Shown here piece after piece: positions 147-17,731 of a DNA stretch of 64,000 nucleotides. A program made the position numbers and the translations under genes. The stretch is from the sequence record NC_070963.1; one strand, 5' to 3'. Each line of letters starts with the position of its first letter. The stretch's first letter is position 1. Under the pieces are notes generated by a model. It searched no databases. It was given only the letters and a program-made list of their open reading frames with translations, and was not told where the DNA came from.

Positions 147-344
147 ATGATTAAACTATTTCAGTTTCTATTGACTGGTTGTTGGCATTCGTGGGAAGTA
201 TTTGAGAAAAAACAAATCTTTGATACTGGTACAAAAATCACGCACGATCAAGAAGAAGTTCCACTTCCTATTGCAACAAAATACATTATGCGTTGCAAAC
301 ACTGCGGTGAGATGAAGGTCTTTGATACAATGAAGGTTTGGTAA
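147..344 (+). CDS. hypothetical protein with CxxC motif
   Basis: ORF track 117..344; ATG at 147 more likely; RCKHCG motif; its TAA overlaps the next ATG (TAATG). Confidence 0.6.
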   Translation: MIKLFQFLLTGCWHSWEVFEKKQIFDTGTKITHDQEEVPLPIATKYIMRCKHCGEMKVFDTMKVW

Positions 345-400
345 TGGACTTCCCAGTATTCTTAAACAAGTGGATAATCGGATTTAAATCGATTAAATGA
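344..400 (+). pseudogene. truncated original 5' end of the gene now at 1342..1674
   Basis: Translates MDFPVFLNKWIIGFKSIK*, matching MDFPVFLNKFIIGNKYL at 1342; start coupled to the upstream stop. Confidence 0.8.
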
Positions 401-448
401 TGGTAGATAAATAATAGTGCTCTAATGTGTTCGCATCCATAAGAGTGG

Positions 449-474
449 AAAAGGTGTCTTCGGGCACCTTTTCT
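449..474 (+). terminator. intrinsic terminator-like hairpin with C(UUCG)G loop
   Basis: AAAAGGTGTC-TTCG-GGCACCTTTT followed by T-rich tail. Confidence 0.7.
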
Positions 475-476
475 TG

Positions 477-484
477 TATAAATA
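477..484 (+). promoter_or_regulatory. T4-type late promoter
   Basis: Exact TATAAATA 31 nt upstream of the endonuclease ATG. Confidence 0.8.
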
Positions 485-514
485 GTATTGCGAACACAAT
501 TTAGAAGCAGAACT

Positions 515-1273
515 ATGGTAAATCCTAATAGGTTTTATACTTACGCATATCTACGGGAAGATAGAACTCCTTATTATATTGGTAAAGGTAAAGGAAATAG
601 AGCATTTTCTTCAAATAGGACAATAAACAGACCAAAAGACAAATCAAGAATAATATTTCTCAAACAGAACCTAACTGAAGCAGAAGCATTCAAGCACGAA
701 AAGTATATGATTGCCGTGCTTGGTAGAAAAGATTTAGGAACTGGAATACTTCATAATAGAACTGATGGTGGAGATGGTGCTTCGGGTTCTGTTAGGAGTA
801 AAGAATCCAAAATAAAATGTAGTGAATCAAAGAAAGGTGAAAAGAATCCTCAATACGGTAAACGAGGTAAGAATTCTCATAATTATGGGAAATCTCCTTC
901 TGAAGAAACCAGAAAAAAATTAAGTGAGAGGCAAAAAGGTGAAAAGAATCACAATTATGGCAAATCTTTTTCCGAAGAAACCAGAAAAAGAATGAGTGAA
1001 GCACGAAAAGGTGAAAACAATCCTATGTATGGTAAATCACGTTCAGAAGAAAGCAGAAAAAAGCAAAGTGAATCACTTAAAGGTAAATATGGTGGAGAAA
1101 AACACTATCTCTACGGTAAATCACCTTCAGAAGAAACTAAAAGAAAAATAGGTGAGACAAATAAAGATAAAAAATGGTGGAACGATGGCAAAGAAAATAC
1201 TAAATTTACTGAAGAATGTCCTGGAGAAAATTGGGTTCCTGGTCGTGGAAAGAAAAAACTATGTGTCACCTGA
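515..1273 (+). mobile_element. free-standing GIY-YIG (Seg-like) homing endonuclease with NUMOD3-type repeats
   Basis: YTYAYLRED..YYIGKG catalytic motif, conserved E and HN.T.GGDG, repeated GEKNP/HNYGKS.SEETRKK DNA-binding modules; ATG at 515 preferred to TTG at 488. Confidence 0.9.
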
Positions 1274-1320
1274 CGAACTGGCACGAGAAGACTTGATTTT
1301 TATTGAAATTTTGGTATAAT
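1263..1320 (+). promoter_or_regulatory. early promoter cassette (22-bp palindrome plus TATAAT)
   Basis: GTGTCACC-TGACGA-ACTGGCAC at 1263-1284; TATAAT at 1315-1320. Confidence 0.7.
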
Positions 1321-1341
1321 ATCTGTACTACAAGAATAATG

Positions 1342-1674
1342 ATGGACTTTCCTGTATTTCTAAACAAATTCATAATCGGCAACAAGTATCTTCGGTACAC
1401 CAGTTTTGGGTGTTGGTTCCGTCTCATCAATCATTCTAATTGGAGAATGGACGACCACCAAAGATACTGGGACTTTTGGTTGAGTATAAATCGTGGGTAT
1501 GATGATATGAACTATCAACATAAGTTTAGAGAGTTCTGGGGTAAAAACGCAAAACCAGAACGCATTGTGCTATCCAAAGAAGACTTTGATGCTTTGGTAG
1601 AAAAACTCAACGAACCACCACAATATAACGAAAAGATTGCGAGAGTGTTACAACGAAAAGCGCCTTGGGACTAA
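1342..1674 (+). CDS. hypothetical protein with DUF1778-like C-terminus (RIVLSKEDFDALVEKLNEPP)
   Basis: ORF track 1303..1674; ATG at 1339/1342 follows the promoter and matches the remnant at 344. Confidence 0.65.
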   Translation: MDFPVFLNKFIIGNKYLRYTSFGCWFRLINHSNWRMDDHQRYWDFWLSINRGYDDMNYQHKFREFWGKNAKPERIVLSKEDFDALVEKLNEPPQYNEKIARVLQRKAPWD

Positions 1675-3424: not shown

Positions 3425-5380
3425 ATGGCATTCACGAAGATTGCTGCCGCTGGTATTGGAAGCACAGGAACAGTTACATTAGAACGACTTATTGTAACTG
3501 GAAGCATTGATACTCCTGTGATTACTGGAGCAGCATCTACGGCAAATGTAAGAGCAAATAGTTTAGTTGTATCTGGAGTTTCGACTTTTGGTAGTGTTGT
3601 AGCAACCACAGGAACTTTTAGTGGTAATGTCAGTATTGCTGGAACTCTGACTTATGAAGATGTCACTAATATTGATTCGGTTGGTCTGATTACTGCTAGA
3701 AGTGGTGTAGTAGTAAATACAGGAACAGCAACAACAGCATTAGTTGTTAATGGTAGTGCAAGAATTACTGGTATTTTGACAATTGGAACCAGTTCTGTAA
3801 CTCTTGATGGAACGAATAATCAAGTTAATGTAGGAACTGGTGTTACGATTCATCACACTAATGGTGTTCAAGTTGGTGGAAATACAGTTCATTCAACTGG
3901 ACTTACTGTTAATCAAGTGAATGCAATTGGTATTATTACAGCATCAAGTTTTAGAGGTGATGGTTCTCAACTGACTGGTATTGCTGCTACGACGAATGTA
4001 AGAACTAATAGTCTTGTTGTTTCTGGGGTTTCTACTTTTGCTGCAGGTAGTGTTAGTGCTCCTTCTATAAGTCCAACAGGGGACAGTAACACAGGACTAT
4101 TTTTTCCTGATGCTGATACTATAGCAATTGCTGAAGGTGGTGTTGAGGCATTAAGGATTGATAGTAGTTCTAATATTGGTATAGGAACCAATGCCCCAAC
4201 TACAAAACTCACAATAACAGATGGTGTTGCTCCTTATGCGGCAACCACTGGCGATTTAATTCAACTTAAAAGAGGTGTATCAAATGGTAATGATACAACT
4301 TCTGCTACTGGAATTTCATTTGCCAACAATAGTAATGGATTCCGTATTGCTTATGGTGGAACAAATGATAGATTGAGGTTTATAGATGGCGGTGCTATTG
4401 AATGTCTTTCTCTATTGAATGGTGGAAATACTGGAATAGGAACAGTAAGTCCAAGAGTAAAACTTGATGTAGGCAATGGAAAACTTTTAGTAGTACAAAG
4501 TGGGACTCCTACAGGAAATTATAATTATGGAGTAAATACACACGTTGCTTCAGGTGCTGGAGGAATGCAGGTTACTAGTGGAAGCAGTTATAGTTATTTT
4601 GTTGGCAATTCTACTGATATAATATTAGGTTCAGATCAAGGATCTACTGGAATTAAAGTTCAAGTTTCAAGAACTTGTGGAGACAATTCTTTAGTTATAA
4701 CTTCTTCTGGACAGGTTGTTGCAAATTATAACTCAACAACTGGAGTAGTTAATTCTTTTGGACATGGTGGTTATTATGGATTAAGTGCAAATAGTAACTC
4801 TACAGCATTAGCAGATCAAAGGTGCTCTTGGTTTTTGCGTGGTTCTTTAGAAGGTACTAATAATGAATTAGGAAACTCTGTATTATTAATTCAAAATACA
4901 GGAGGAGCTGCAATTAATATTGGAGATCTAATAAAAGGATATAGAGGTTCTTCACTCATATTCCGTGTATCTGGTGGTGATGGAAGTGTTAGGAACAGCA
5001 GTGGAAGTTATGCTGCTATTTCTGATGAAAGAATTAAACAAGATATTGTTGATGCAGAATCGCAATGGAATGATATTAAATCAGTTCGTGTTAGAAAATT
5101 TAAACTTAAAGAAAATGTTGAAACTTATGGCGAATCTGCACCAACATTTATTGGTGTTATAGCCCAAGAATTAGAACAAATAAGTCCTGGACTGGTTGAT
5201 CAAGCAAAATTAAAAAATGGTTCTTCGGATCCAGAAAGCATTAAATCTGTAAAATATAGTATTTTATACATGAAATCAGTTAAAGCTCTTCAGGAAGCAC
5301 AACAACGTATTGAAACTTTAGAATCACAAGTTTCTTTACTTATAAGAAAAGTTGAAGAATTAGAAAATAAAATTATTTGA
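3425..5380 (+). CDS. tail fibre-like protein with C-terminal peptidase S74 intramolecular chaperone
   Basis: G/S/T-rich beta repeats (NSLVVSGVSTF twice, GIGT motifs); C-terminal SDERIKQDI...GVIAQEL...KYSILY...coiled coil; GATAAATA late-type promoter at 3396. Confidence 0.85.
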   Translation: MAFTKIAAAGIGSTGTVTLERLIVTGSIDTPVITGAASTANVRANSLVVSGVSTFGSVVATTGTFSGNVSIAGTLTYEDVTNIDSVGLITARSGVVVNTGTATTALVVNGSARITGILTIGTSSVTLDGTNNQVNVGTGVTIHHTNGVQVGGNTVHSTGLTVNQVNAIGIITASSFRGDGSQLTGIAATTNVRTNSLVVSGVSTFAAGSVSAPSISPTGDSNTGLFFPDADTIAIAEGGVEALRIDSSSNIGIGTNAPTTKLTITDGVAPYAATTGDLIQLKRGVSNGNDTTSATGISFANNSNGFRIAYGGTNDRLRFIDGGAIECLSLLNGGNTGIGTVSPRVKLDVGNGKLLVVQSGTPTGNYNYGVNTHVASGAGGMQVTSGSSYSYFVGNSTDIILGSDQGSTGIKVQVSRTCGDNSLVITSSGQVVANYNSTTGVVNSFGHGGYYGLSANSNSTALADQRCSWFLRGSLEGTNNELGNSVLLIQNTGGAAINIGDLIKGYRGSSLIFRVSGGDGSVRNSSGSYAAISDERIKQDIVDAESQWNDIKSVRVRKFKLKENVETYGESAPTFIGVIAQELEQISPGLVDQAKLKNGSSDPESIKSVKYSILYMKSVKALQEAQQRIETLESQVSLLIRKVEELENKII

Positions 5381-14614: not shown

Positions 14615-14669
14615 CAGTTGAGGAACTGTCATACACCCCCCTTGTGCTCCCTCCAGAATCCTCTATAAT
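14611..14669 (+). promoter_or_regulatory. early promoter cassette
   Basis: GTGACAGT-TGAGGA-ACTGTCAT; TATAAT at 14664. Confidence 0.75.
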
Positions 14670-14690
14670 AAGCACATACGCAACCAACCC

Positions 14691-15041
14691 ATGACTACCA
14701 CCTTCGCTGATTACGCCGCCCAGCAAGAGGCACGTGAGAGCATCTCCGCTGCTGTTCTGAAGCATACTCTATCACTCTGTGAGGCACTTCGTATGAATGC
14801 TCCGGATGATTATGACTATGTGATTGAATCTGGTCGCAAGTATCATAAGATCATTATGATTGATTCTGGTAAAGGCAGAAGTGTTCACGCTTTTGTTGAT
14901 AAGAAGACTGGTGAAATTTATAAACCAGCATCGTTTCGTGCTCCCGCAAAACACGTTCGCTATGATTTGCGTATCATTGAACAAAGGGAATGGGTTCTTG
15001 CTAATGCTGATTGGGCGGGCAGTTGGTTATATCTGCGATGA
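14691..15041 (+). CDS. conserved phage hypothetical protein
   Basis: GRKYHKI...SVHAFVDKKTGEIYKPAS..APAK..RY motif typical of T4-like phage early proteins. Confidence 0.7.
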   Translation: MTTTFADYAAQQEARESISAAVLKHTLSLCEALRMNAPDDYDYVIESGRKYHKIIMIDSGKGRSVHAFVDKKTGEIYKPASFRAPAKHVRYDLRIIEQREWVLANADWAGSWLYLR

Positions 15042-15111
15042 ACATGACCACAACACATAAACTTATTTTTGTTTCTTCTTTTTTTATTTTTATGAATTGG
15101 GGTGTTAGATT

Positions 15112-15567
15112 ATGTCAGTTATTATTCACAGTGGATATGGATATCGCAAACGCCTCTGTGAGGATGTTTCCTGCTGGTTTCTGAATAAGTTTCTGCCGCG
15201 CCATAAGATTCACCTAGAGATTGTGCATCGTGGTCTGAAACGTGATTGTGTTTATGGGTATTGTGACTTTGTAGGAGAGTCTTATCGTCCTAGAGAGTTT
15301 CTGATTGAATTGGATACTTATATGCATGAGGATTTGTATATACAAACTCTTTTGCATGAGTTGGTGCATCTGCGACAGTGGGTGGTGGGTTCTCTGCGAC
15401 AGAAAAGAGGAAAAATGTATTATGGTAAAGAATGTGTGGAGGATATTGATTATTGGCATCAACCTCATGAGATAATTGCCAGGAGAGAGGAAATATTGTT
15501 ATATCAAAAATACATGAAAACAAAAAAATCTACTTCACGATGTTTTGTTAATAGACTTTGTAAATAG
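15112..15567 (+). CDS. putative HExxH metallopeptidase-like protein with replaced C-terminus
   Basis: TLLHELVHLRQW and downstream PHE motif; 3' end duplicated at 16315-16431. Confidence 0.7.
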   Translation: MSVIIHSGYGYRKRLCEDVSCWFLNKFLPRHKIHLEIVHRGLKRDCVYGYCDFVGESYRPREFLIELDTYMHEDLYIQTLLHELVHLRQWVVGSLRQKRGKMYYGKECVEDIDYWHQPHEIIARREEILLYQKYMKTKKSTSRCFVNRLCK

Positions 15568-15629
15568 TATTAGATGGGCAGCAACTTGTGTCAGGGGTGA
15601 TAAAAGTTGCGTAAGTCCCATTTTTATGA

Positions 15630-15637
15630 TATAAATA
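15630..15637 (+). promoter_or_regulatory. T4-type late promoter inside a translational-lock hairpin
   Basis: Exact TATAAATA between arms 15586-15601 and 15648-15663. Confidence 0.8.
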
Positions 15638-15662
15638 CTAATAAGTCATTACCCCTGACACA

Positions 15663-16313
15663 ATGGAAAAATATTACACTTACGCATATTTGCGTGAAGA
15701 TAGAACTCCTTATTACATAGGTAAAGGTTGTGGAAATAGAATTAACGAAAATAAAGGAAGACCTTGTAAAAAACCAAAAGATAAATCCAGAATTATATTT
15801 CTTAAAAAGAATTTGACTGAAGAAGAAGCATTCAAACACGAAATCTATATGGTTTTTGTCTTTGGTAGAAAAGATTTGGGAACAGGCATTCTTCATAATA
15901 AAACTAATGGTGGTGATGGAGTTTCTGGATTGATTCACTTACCAGAATCAAAAATTAAAATGGCAATAACAAAAAATACAAAATATTGGAATAATGGTGT
16001 AAAAACTGTTAGAAAAATTGATTGTCCTGGTGAAGGTTGGGTTGAAGGTAGATTAAATATAAATTATCATAATTGCAGAAAAGGATTATATTGGTGGAAT
16101 AATGGAGTAGAATTAAAAGTTTCTAAAGAGTGTCCTGGTGAGGGGTGGAATAGAGGAATTGGAAAACTAATCAATAGAAAAGGTGTCGGTAAAAAGTATA
16201 ATGAAAATGGATTTTCAACAAGGGGATTGTATTGGTGGAATAATGGGATAAAAAATACTATGAAAAAAGAATGTCCTGGAGAAGGGTGGGTAAGAGGTAA
16301 AATTAAACTTTAA
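15663..16313 (+). mobile_element. free-standing GIY-YIG homing endonuclease, paralog of 515..1273
   Basis: YTYAYLREDRTPYYIGKG catalytic domain nearly identical to the first copy; three WWNNG...CPGEGW.RG repeats. Confidence 0.9.
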
Positions 16314-16314
16314 G

Positions 16315-16431
16315 ATAAAGGCACGAGAGCAAGAAGAAACCCTATATTATGAATATCTAAAAGAAAAGAGTCATCAACCACTTTCACAACCGACACATTA
16401 CTTCCCAAATCGTCTGATGATTCCTGTATAA
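16315..16431 (+). pseudogene. displaced original 3' end of the 15112 gene
   Basis: Translates IKAREQEETLYYEYLK...YFPNRLMIPV*, aligning with IIARREEILLYQKYMK...CFVNRLCK*; no start codon. Confidence 0.75.
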
Positions 16432-16454
16432 TTACACTATCACACATTACAATC

Positions 16455-16820
16455 ATGAAGTATCTTCTTCCAGTTCTGTTGTTGCTTCCGACTCCTGTGT
16501 TTGCACAACAAGTGAATAATTATGCAGTTTGCACTCAAAATCAAGAAGTTTATCGTCCCGGTGGATATGATCGCTACGGAAATTATGTTCCTGGTGGTGT
16601 AACTGTGCAAACTTATAATGTTCCTTGCAATAATGTCAGACCTGCAAATCAATATTACAATAATGGTGGATATGGTGGAAGATATTGCAATCCAACCAGA
16701 AGTGTATTGGGTGCTCTGTTGGGTGGTGGTGTTGCTGCAAGCATGAGTCGTGGAAATGGATATTATTGGTCTGTTCCTGTGGGTGCTGCGATCGGCGGTG
16801 CAATGTTTGGATGCAACTGA
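16455..16820 (+). CDS. secreted protein with glycine-zipper C-terminus
   Basis: Signal peptide MKYLLPVLLLLPTPVFA; GALLGGGVAA..VGAAIGG; TATAAT at 16427. Confidence 0.65.
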   Translation: MKYLLPVLLLLPTPVFAQQVNNYAVCTQNQEVYRPGGYDRYGNYVPGGVTVQTYNVPCNNVRPANQYYNNGGYGGRYCNPTRSVLGALLGGGVAASMSRGNGYYWSVPVGAAIGGAMFGCN

Positions 16821-16874
16821 CAATTCTCAAACTGGCACAGGAGCACTCTATATGCCCCTGTGATGCATTATAAT
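16817..16874 (+). promoter_or_regulatory. early promoter cassette
   Basis: CTGACAAT-N6-ACTGGCAC; TATAAT at 16869. Confidence 0.7.
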
Positions 16875-17061
16875 AACAAGGTAATCAAGGGAACCAGCAA
16901 TGGTCACTGACACCACACAAGACAAACAGATCCGTCGATCCATCATCAAATCAGTCGAGTCAATGGATCTGCGACTTCTGCAACGTATTGCTTATGAAGT
17001 CCGTTGTGAAGAACTTGGTCTTCATGCTGACACTTGGAAACTTTACCCTGAAGATTGAATC

Positions 17062-17265
17062 ATGCAACTCTCTGATGCTTCTATTTCCAAGATCGCTGAT
17101 GCACTCAAACCATCAGTGATTGATTATGTCTCAATGGATGAAGGTTTTATAGAGACTCTACAAACTACCATTATTGATGGTATTCGGGATACAATGGGAG
17201 ATATGGATGAGGATTTACTTTTAGAAATTGCATTGCTAGTTTTTCAACGAATCGATCTCAAATGA
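17062..17265 (+). CDS. hypothetical protein
   Basis: ORF track. Confidence 0.6.
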   Translation: MQLSDASISKIADALKPSVIDYVSMDEGFIETLQTTIIDGIRDTMGDMDEDLLLEIALLVFQRIDLK

Positions 17266-17731
17266 AACTTCGTTACTTAATTATTGGTGCAATTGGATTT
17301 GTTGTTGGATGGAATGTCTTTCTCATTCAACGTGACCATCAACTTTTTGAATCTTACAATCAACCCTCACAATCGGAGAGAATGCAATGAATGATTTTAT
17401 GAATGCTTATCAAGATTTCCTGAATCACTCTGAAATTGATTGGAATCAAAAACAACAAGAAGCAAGGAAATATGTTGAAATGTTTTATGAACAGAAAGCA
17501 GCAGAACTTGAGATTACCGTTGATTATTATATGCAGGAGTTTATGTAATGAATGAAGAAACAAAGTTGATTCTTGCTCTACATCAAATTGAGAATCTTAC
17601 TTCTCTTCTTTCACAAAATGAGTATGAAAAGTATCTGTATTCTCATTTGATTCGAATTCAAGTTGAACTTCAAAGGCAGTTGACAAACATCAATTCTTAT
17701 TCTAAAATCAAGGAGTAATTTACACAAACTG

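Follow-up and report, generated by a model that had tools for sequence, protein, structure and literature searches.

A GIY-YIG-like endonuclease gene and a carried replacement C-terminus inside a conserved gene of the cyanophage S-SRM01

How can a free-standing endonuclease gene lie within the reading frame of a conserved phage gene, when the gene still ends in a proper tail and a second version of that tail follows further downstream? The question is raised by a locus of Synechococcus phage S-SRM01, a freshwater T4-like cyanomyovirus with a genome of 240.8 kb. The stretch analysed, referred to here as the window, comprises 64,000 nucleotides (nt) of the record NC_070963.1, and window positions equal record positions minus 62000. 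Most probably, the conserved cyanophage gene gp151 has been invaded by a mobile cassette that measures about 843 bp, has a free-standing homing endonuclease gene of the GIY-YIG type (gp152) at its core and has carried a replacement tail along with it. An earlier reading of the window from its letters alone (the original prediction) had proposed an insertion with a carried, diverged gene end, and this is supported by alleles devoid of the cassette and by a tail that travels with the endonuclease gene.

The host gene, its two tails and the cassette

The open reading frame (ORF) 15112-15567 codes for a protein of 151 amino acids (aa) with the motif HELVH at residues 82-86 and a tail that begins IIARREEILLYQ and ends FVNRLCK. 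The protein belongs to a metallopeptidase-like HExxH family referred to as cyanophage 'T4-like gene cluster 70' and matches PHROG 10499 (E=7e-45). Its similarity to a SprT-like model is weak and under the cut-off; its relatives have been annotated as WLM protease domain proteins or predicted metallopeptidases. The organisation of the locus is as follows, the carried C-terminus being called the patch and the displaced resident C-terminus the remnant.

15112..15474, plus strand: resident body of the host gene (gp151), ending at the codon after His-Glu
15475..15567, plus strand: carried replacement C-terminus (patch), the tail in use, 30 codons and a stop
15568..15662, plus strand: spacer of 95 nt with a hairpin and TATAAATA
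15663..16313, plus strand: free-standing GIY-YIG-like endonuclease gene (gp152), 216 aa
16315..16431, plus strand: remnant of the resident C-terminus, 38 codons and a stop, in the frame of the host gene and without a start codon
15471..16318, plus strand: insertion as compared with the empty allele L015, 848 nt replacing 5 nt, a net gain of 843 nt or 281 codons

The patch is closed by a stop codon at 15565-15567 and the endonuclease gene is read in a different frame from the host gene. The remnant starts one base past the endonuclease stop, reads IKAREQEETLYYEYLK...YFPNRLMIPV from 16315 and terminates in a stop codon at 16429-16431; it shares the frame of the host gene because the insert is a multiple of three. 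The host-gene tail, the endonuclease ORF and the in-frame remnant are all present as described from the sequence, and so are two further details of that description: the two tails agree at eight of their first 16 residues and share an F-NRL motif, and each junction contains the sequence AGATA (15470-15474 and 16313-16317).

The two tails are homologues of the same region that have diverged widely. Over its whole length the patch shares 34% aa identity with the remnant of its own genome, and over the first 17 codons 27 of 51 nt are identical. The remnant aligns column for column with the C-termini of family members. The tail in use also aligns with the family tails; it is shorter by 7 residues and keeps A123, E127, L130, Y134 and F-NRL. 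When the homologues of P-SSM2 and P-SSM5 were compared by tblastn with the whole 64-kb window, the remnant (16312-16419) was the second match (E=5e-6 and 1e-6). A hidden Markov model (HMM) of eight distant homologues places the remnant at E=0.14 in a six-frame search of the window, the weak score being due to the lack of a long tail in most of the eight. By the tblastn matches and the alignment the likeness of the remnant to the family tail is more than chance. A fluoride riboswitch suggested by Rfam within the remnant (16359-16433; 18.3 bits against a cut-off of 34, E=0.05) has been judged a chance match.

The difference in base composition claimed between the parts of the locus holds: the body (40.5% GC) and the remnant (36.8%) are richer in GC than the tail in use (26.7%) and the endonuclease gene (30.7%). 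In a second allele with the cassette the body and the remnant have 41.9% and 51.3%, the tail in use and the endonuclease gene 25.6% and 30.7%. In comparison with the tail of the empty allele L015 the remnant has 4 synonymous and 8 non-synonymous codon differences, as against 17 and 2 in the body, which points to relaxed constraint on the remnant and is consistent with its no longer coding. RefSeq records a minus-strand 'hypothetical protein', PQC13_gp153 (window 16310-16456; record 78310-78447), that exactly covers the remnant; most probably the strand opposite the displaced gene end has been called as a gene by mistake.

Empty, filled and derived alleles

A scan of IMG/VR with the single host protein has identified 59 loci holding homologues (loci and contigs are given below by their L numbers). 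Empty alleles with tails resembling the remnant rather than the tail in use had been predicted, and such alleles were found (L015-L017). Their protein shares 98% of residues 1-120 with that of S-SRM01, and past His-Glu their tail is nearly that of the remnant, beginning EAREQEETLYYEYLKEK and ending FPNRLMIPV. In blastn comparisons window 14664-15470 corresponds to L015 2559-3359 and window 16319-17687 to L015 3365-4752; the two flanks are 5 nt apart in L015 and the net insertion in S-SRM01 is therefore 843 bp. From 16319 onward the DNA is collinear with L015 at 92% identity, and the remnant shares 84-86% nt and 74-76% aa identity with the nearest empty-allele tails. The insertion directly follows the codons for His-Glu. 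Of all 30-nt stretches of the gene, the one in which it lies ranks second in conservation (mean pairwise identity 0.86, against a gene mean of 0.75). A target-site duplication was considered as the source of the AGATA repeat and rejected, as other filled alleles have different codons after His-Glu at the left junction and in the remnant.

The near-isogenic L018, empty at the site under study, has a related endonuclease gene at 2657-2918 with 81% nt identity in the catalytic domain. Its position corresponds to a point between window 17506 and 17541, about 1.1 kb downstream.

The arrangement seen in S-SRM01 occurs at the same codon in six further contigs (L021, L077, L160, L200, L202 and L203). 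Three filled alleles have been aligned in full. Within the cassette their spacers are the most alike (94-97% nt identity), followed by the carried tails (91-95%) and the endonuclease genes (90-91%); the host bodies (66-73%) and the remnants (60-69%) differ much more. The tail in use thus accompanies the endonuclease gene into diverged host alleles, as had been proposed. Since the cassettes are near-identical, the bodies diverged and the remnants specific to the lineage of each contig, the tail and the endonuclease gene move horizontally as a unit. The remnants of S-SRM01 and L021 are closest to the tails of their own nearest empty relatives; the remnant of L077 matches such tails weakly, at 53% at most. 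The endonuclease ORF is intact in all seven filled alleles, and the three compared differ from each other by 32-35 synonymous and 19-24 non-synonymous codon changes in this gene. The remnant is open up to the family stop in six of the seven and is broken once in the other. Gene order around the locus varies among the filled alleles.

The contig L021 also contains a third copy of the gene tail (4615-4815), about 650 bp past the first remnant. This copy continues, in frame, a short N-terminal stretch of unrelated sequence and is near-identical to the tails of the closest empty relatives, which suggests an earlier insertion at the same hot spot.

A further class of alleles has patch sequence at the gene end and no endonuclease gene. 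In L199 the patch is whole and is followed by the beginning of the spacer, from which a deletion extends into the remnant. L157/L158 and L159 have chimeric tails in which 7-12 patch codons, identical in DNA to those of the cassette, are followed by a resident-type tail. Such alleles either are left by loss of the cassette, the patch having recombined with the remnant, or reflect short tracts of conversion; either way the sequence beside the insertion point stays recoded in derivatives devoid of the endonuclease gene. In 107 of the best 120 protein clusters the tail is of the resident type; in the other 13 the tail, or its start, is of the patch type. In L079 an endonuclease gene of 72% identity lies directly 3' of a diverged homologue with an ordinary tail, no remnant being seen; an intergenic layout like this one could have been the source of the first cassette. 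Three classes of allele, namely empty, filled and derived, are established here together with the anatomy of the cassette.

The endonuclease, its spacer and the mirror-image site

GIY-YIG enzymes are defined by GIY and YIG motifs that are separated by some 10-11 residues, with conserved Arg, Glu and Asn residues further along the chain. An alignment of 25 relatives of gp152 has the pattern YTY...YYIGKG...R...E...N, with Y5-T6-Y7, Y17-Y18-I19-G20, R26, E60 and N79 invariant or nearly so, in agreement with this definition. The protein is made up of an N-terminal catalytic domain (about residues 1-100) and a C-terminal part with three WNNG...CPGEGW repeats. The paralogue at window 515-1273, which had been assigned to the same family, shares 43% identity with gp152 overall (E=2e-46) and 68% over the catalytic domain, and it scores 71.6 bits against TIGR01453 ('group I intron endonuclease'), above the cut-off of 56. 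Three paralogues have sub-threshold matches to LEM-3 GIY-YIG. The best match of the family profile in the PDB is a 'GIY-YIG domain-containing protein' (E=0.03). For a low-confidence AlphaFold model built with the two window paralogues as the alignment, the top four Foldseek matches in the PDB are all to the UvrC GIY-YIG domain 1yd6, at weak scores (E 0.24-0.97; template modelling (TM) score 0.36-0.49). Phage relatives of gp152 are annotated as Seg-like or intron-associated endonucleases, and the gene is present or absent at a fixed site in otherwise collinear relatives.

On the strength of the motifs, the paralogue and the weak profile and fold matches, gp152 is treated here as a putative GIY-YIG homing endonuclease with an unclassified C-terminal repeat domain; these features agree with the family assignment first proposed, and no curated model matches the protein above its cut-off. 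The repeats, of the form WNNG...(K/I)(E/D)CPGEGW, occupy the C-terminal half (15960-16310). The paralogues carry NUMOD3, and the repeats of gp152 presumably form the DNA-binding part in place of the NUMOD3 repeats. S-SRM01 holds six GIY-YIG paralogues; its genome also has many annotated HNH and endonuclease VII genes.

The spacer before gp152 appears to be a regulatory unit. It contains a hairpin of 16 bp (arms 15586-15601 and 15648-15663), whose 3' arm reaches the A of the endonuclease start codon, and TATAAATA lies between the arms at 15630-15637; the predicted fold has an energy of -27.9 kcal/mol (z = -2.4). The same hairpin with TATAAATA is found near base for base in L076 (3362-3441), before a 47%-identical paralogue situated behind a helicase-like ORF, and TATAAATA also lies 31 nt before the ATG of the 515 paralogue (477-484). 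The module of hairpin and TATAAATA thus seems to move with the endonuclease genes. Endonuclease genes of T4 are under late-promoter control and hairpin control of translation (PMC2988022); by analogy, the hairpin and the T4-late-promoter-like TATAAATA probably delay translation of the endonuclease to late transcripts. A terminator-like hairpin (window 448-475; GC-rich stem, TTCG loop, then T's) directly precedes the TATAAATA of the 515 paralogue.

At the other end of the insertion the remnant runs into the sequence before the next gene, and elsewhere in the window a paralogue is found in the reverse arrangement:

16427..16454, plus strand: gene-end and intergenic motif, TATAAT overlapping the stop and then TTACA..., preceding the next gene
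16455-16820: next gene, coding for a glycine-zipper protein, 3' of the gene-end motif
344..1674, plus strand: mirror-image site with N-terminal remnant, TATAAATA, paralogous endonuclease and gene in use

The TATAAT in the remnant had been taken as the promoter of the next gene. The hexamer is present at 16427-16432, but a consensus sigma-70 scan gave no acceptable -35 hexamer. A TATAA/TTACAAGGTAATCAA(G)-like motif overlapping the stop is kept in most alleles (gene ends L015-L044) and in remnants, despite the divergence of the coding tails. This TATAA/TTACAAGGTAATCAA motif could serve the next gene as a promoter or in another way, and it may help to explain why remnants persist.

At the mirror-image site an N-terminal remnant of 18 codons (344-400), directly 3' of the stop of the upstream gene, is followed by a GIY-YIG/NUMOD3 endonuclease gene (515-1273) and then by the gene in use (1339-1674) with a recoded N-terminus. 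The insertion proposed near 515 has been confirmed against the empty alleles L166/L167: both copies map to the same stretch of about 55 nt, the flanks overlapping, and the N-termini of L166/L167 match the 344-400 remnant. L164/L165 have an endonuclease gene of 82% identity and a patch-type N-terminus and are devoid of the remnant.

The subfamily was surveyed for flanking duplications. A version with 500 nt per side missed known positives, and a version restricted to 240 nt recovered 8 of 9. The restricted survey of 84 other copies of the family gave one strong case (L148), two that score clearly but are weaker candidates (L120 and L101) and three more that are weak. The flanking duplications for which the original prediction proposed a survey of this subfamily are thus present, at two of the six S-SRM01 copies and about 3-6 of the 84 others, but they are a minority state. 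In L148 (1935-3684), where the target gene is a different one, a 43-aa N-terminal fragment upstream of the family endonuclease gene duplicates part of a downstream gene of 143 aa (local score 128, z about 17).

Mechanism, rival explanations and known systems

The alleles suggest a life cycle for the cassette, in which cleavage, the cleavage site, homing, self-immunity and the timing of expression are taken by analogy from Seg-type and I-TevI-type enzymes. On invasion, the host protein would be completed by the carried AT-rich tail and the resident tail displaced downstream; as the carried tail has its own stop, the patch would finish the protein and the resident tail would no longer be translated. 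The endonuclease would cleave cassette-less alleles within, or close to, the conserved stretch where the cassette inserts. A filled genome would then serve as the template for repair, with the gene body as the left homology and the remnant plus downstream DNA as the right homology, and patch, spacer and endonuclease gene would be copied together. Since the patch is recoded, a filled allele would lack an intact target and would offer little homology for looping the cassette out. The cassette may later be lost through short-homology deletions that leave the whole patch or its first 7-12 codons. The first cassette would most likely have arisen once, by one-sided repair that copied a donor gene end with an adjacent intergenic endonuclease gene and was closed through microhomology.

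A different reading of the locus takes the stretch from about 15471 to about 16318 for a group I intron, or for a spliced element of another kind, and has the mature mRNA join the body to the 'remnant' as the true tail. As the insert is a multiple of three and the remnant is in frame, such joining would yield a resident-type protein, and group I introns do occur in the psbA region of this phage. A search of 14900-16900 with Rfam at E up to 10 gave no intron match, while the same search, as a positive control, detected Intron_gpI twice in the psbA region (57.4 and 39 bits); the proposal that the insertion is splicing-free is supported by this comparison. Moreover, merely 0-1 nt follow the endonuclease stop, leaving no room for a 3' intron core, and the sequence after the junction is a homologue of the conserved family tail with its own stop and is not intron-like. 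The relaxed constraint on the remnant, its disruption in one filled allele and the derivative L199, in which the patch is the sole tail, also speak against splicing, which is hardly credible on this evidence. An intein is ruled out by the stop at 15565-15567, the 95-nt spacer and the endonuclease being in another frame. A gene split into two needed pieces is likewise ruled out, the tails being overlapping homologues of the same residues and the downstream one having no start. The split psbA gene itself lies at L013 32742-34700 (record 207241-209199), with a PhotoRC-II RNA motif upstream (64 bits).

Two other explanations accept the insertion and deny the mobility of the tail with the endonuclease, or the role of the nuclease. 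The locus might be a scar of a single illegitimate recombination followed by vertical descent, as the AGATA microhomology at both junctions, the one-sided, microhomology-closed repair documented in T4 (PMC2988022) and the rarity of flank duplications (two of the six S-SRM01 paralogues and a few percent of family copies) would allow. Under vertical descent the cassette ought to be at least as diverged as its flanks. The opposite is observed: the cassette is at the same codon in seven contigs, the three aligned ones are 90-97% identical in it against 66-73% in the bodies and 60-69% in the remnants, and the S-SRM01 body is 98% identical in protein to empty alleles. A scar of this kind is therefore an improbable account of the locus as a whole, and an accident of the same sort is the likely origin of the first cassette. 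The endonuclease gene might instead be a passive passenger, uninvolved or dead, in swaps of gene ends by homologous recombination among mosaic cyanophages. The variable regions of cyanomyoviruses are indeed mosaic, and the filled alleles differ in the surrounding gene order. Yet the junctions are at identical codons in all filled alleles, and a plain exchange of gene ends would remove the resident tail instead of leaving two tails. None of the seven endonuclease ORFs is disrupted, and synonymous changes predominate among the three compared; the DNA around the insertion is strongly conserved, as the target of an endonuclease would be; and a second paralogue has the mirror arrangement. We consider the passenger role quite unlikely, at about the level of the scar.

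Several observations weigh against the preferred reading of a mobile endonuclease cassette. No Pfam or NCBIfam model matched gp152 and its sequence alone found no match in the PDB, while its C-terminal repeats matched nothing in Pfam, NCBIfam or the PDB and resemble no familiar DNA-binding domain. The AlphaFold model has a predicted local distance difference test (pLDDT) score of 57, with 70-84 in the core strands and helix, and the enzyme may be inactive today. Functionality of the hybrid protein of body and patch is presumed from its conserved residues only. The patch has at most 37% aa identity with any resident tail and the original donor lineage was not found; filled alleles are a small minority of the family. 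Most copies of the endonuclease family show no flank duplication, so that the carrying of a patch is recurrent rather than a general property.

The closest known counterparts are mobile ORFs (mORFs) of fungal mitochondria that carry a foreign C-terminus. They have been described for atp6 of Allomyces macrogynus (Paquin, Laforest & Lang 1994, as cited in PMC3630166) and for atp6, atp9, cox2 and nad3 of Glomus sp. (PMC3630166), and C-terminal duplications of atp6 and cob beside GIY-YIG/LAGLIDADG ORFs are known in Endoconidiophora (PMC6279837). The 'splicing-free system' of the original prediction is therefore supported at this locus but is not new in kind, as mitochondrial mORFs do likewise (PMC3630166). 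As in mORFs, the S-SRM01 endonuclease ORF is in the 3' part of a protein gene and is preceded by an in-frame foreign C-terminus; the native C-terminus is kept downstream and matches near relatives, and the inserted end is far more diverged, which argues for its horizontal origin. GIY-YIG enzymes are also among the mORF endonucleases. In contrast to mORFs, the host is a phage genome and not mitochondrial DNA. The S-SRM01 endonuclease is a separate ORF after a stop, a spacer and a hairpin, whereas some mORF endonucleases are fused in phase. Unlike mORFs, the locus has a population of empty, filled, patch-only and chimeric alleles, and the genome has a mirror-image N-terminal version for which we have seen no mitochondrial counterpart described.

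Among phages, the free-standing Seg and Mob endonucleases of T4-like phages, known for 'intronless homing' (SegF, SegG, SegB and MobE; PMC2988022, PMC2790892), share with the S-SRM01 element the free-standing GIY-YIG genes, the presence/absence polymorphism between relatives and, probably, the late-promoter and hairpin control of translation. The co-conversion of donor flanking DNA during their homing would be a further likeness to the cassette. They lie between genes, cut a neighbour and replace flanking markers, whereas the S-SRM01 element is inside a frame and the displaced end is kept. The duplication might first have been made by one-sided homing with illegitimate double-strand-break repair (Parker, Belisle & Belfort 1999, summarised in PMC2988022), in which homology on one side and a microhomology junction on the other would let a gene end be copied into a recipient together with an adjacent endonuclease gene. 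In that summary it is an experimental model with the td intron; for S-SRM01 it would account for the origin only, the later spread appearing two-sided. Genes split by endonuclease genes, such as nrdA with mobE in Aeromonas phage Aeh1 (PMC3045599) and the 'fractured genes' with split inteins (PMC2677866), solve the same problem of an endonuclease in a coding sequence with the host function kept and no RNA splicing. Those systems keep both pieces as two polypeptides with no duplication, whereas in S-SRM01 one polypeptide would be made and the displaced end would be redundant.

Prophages and islands that integrate into tRNA and protein genes have an attachment site that supplies a replacement for the 3' end of the target gene. 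They share the principle that a substitute gene end renders the insertion harmless. They differ in using an integrase and near-identical short repeats, in place of the presumed double-strand-break repair and the diverged homologue of S-SRM01. The phage literature searched for a carried gene end describes only intergenic, intron, intein or split-gene arrangements, and the S-SRM01 genome paper does not mention the locus. The architecture, known from mitochondria, is thus first seen in a phage here, within the literature searched.

To our knowledge, the free-standing homing endonuclease genes of phages have been regarded as limited to the gaps between genes, unless an intron, an intein or a tolerated gene split makes room for them. 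The locus described here is a fourth solution in phage, with natural alleles for each stage, namely empty, filled, patch-only and chimeric footprints, so that metagenomes give a direct view of the life cycle of a homing element and of the lateral movement of gene ends that it causes. The locus also links phage elements with the mitochondrial mobile ORFs, and it is a warning for annotation, as an antisense 'hypothetical protein' has been placed over the remnant and the hybrid tail distorts gene phylogenies. We suggest tentatively, and with more doubt than confidence, that the carrying of a diverged gene end, 5' or 3', is a recurrent and selected habit of this GIY-YIG subfamily of cyanophages. 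If so, coding sequences would be colonised by these elements without introns or inteins, protein ends would be moved between distant phages as a by-product, and recoded alleles free of the endonuclease would be left behind. This would amount to an endonuclease-driven route of modular protein evolution and of target-site escape in natural phage populations.

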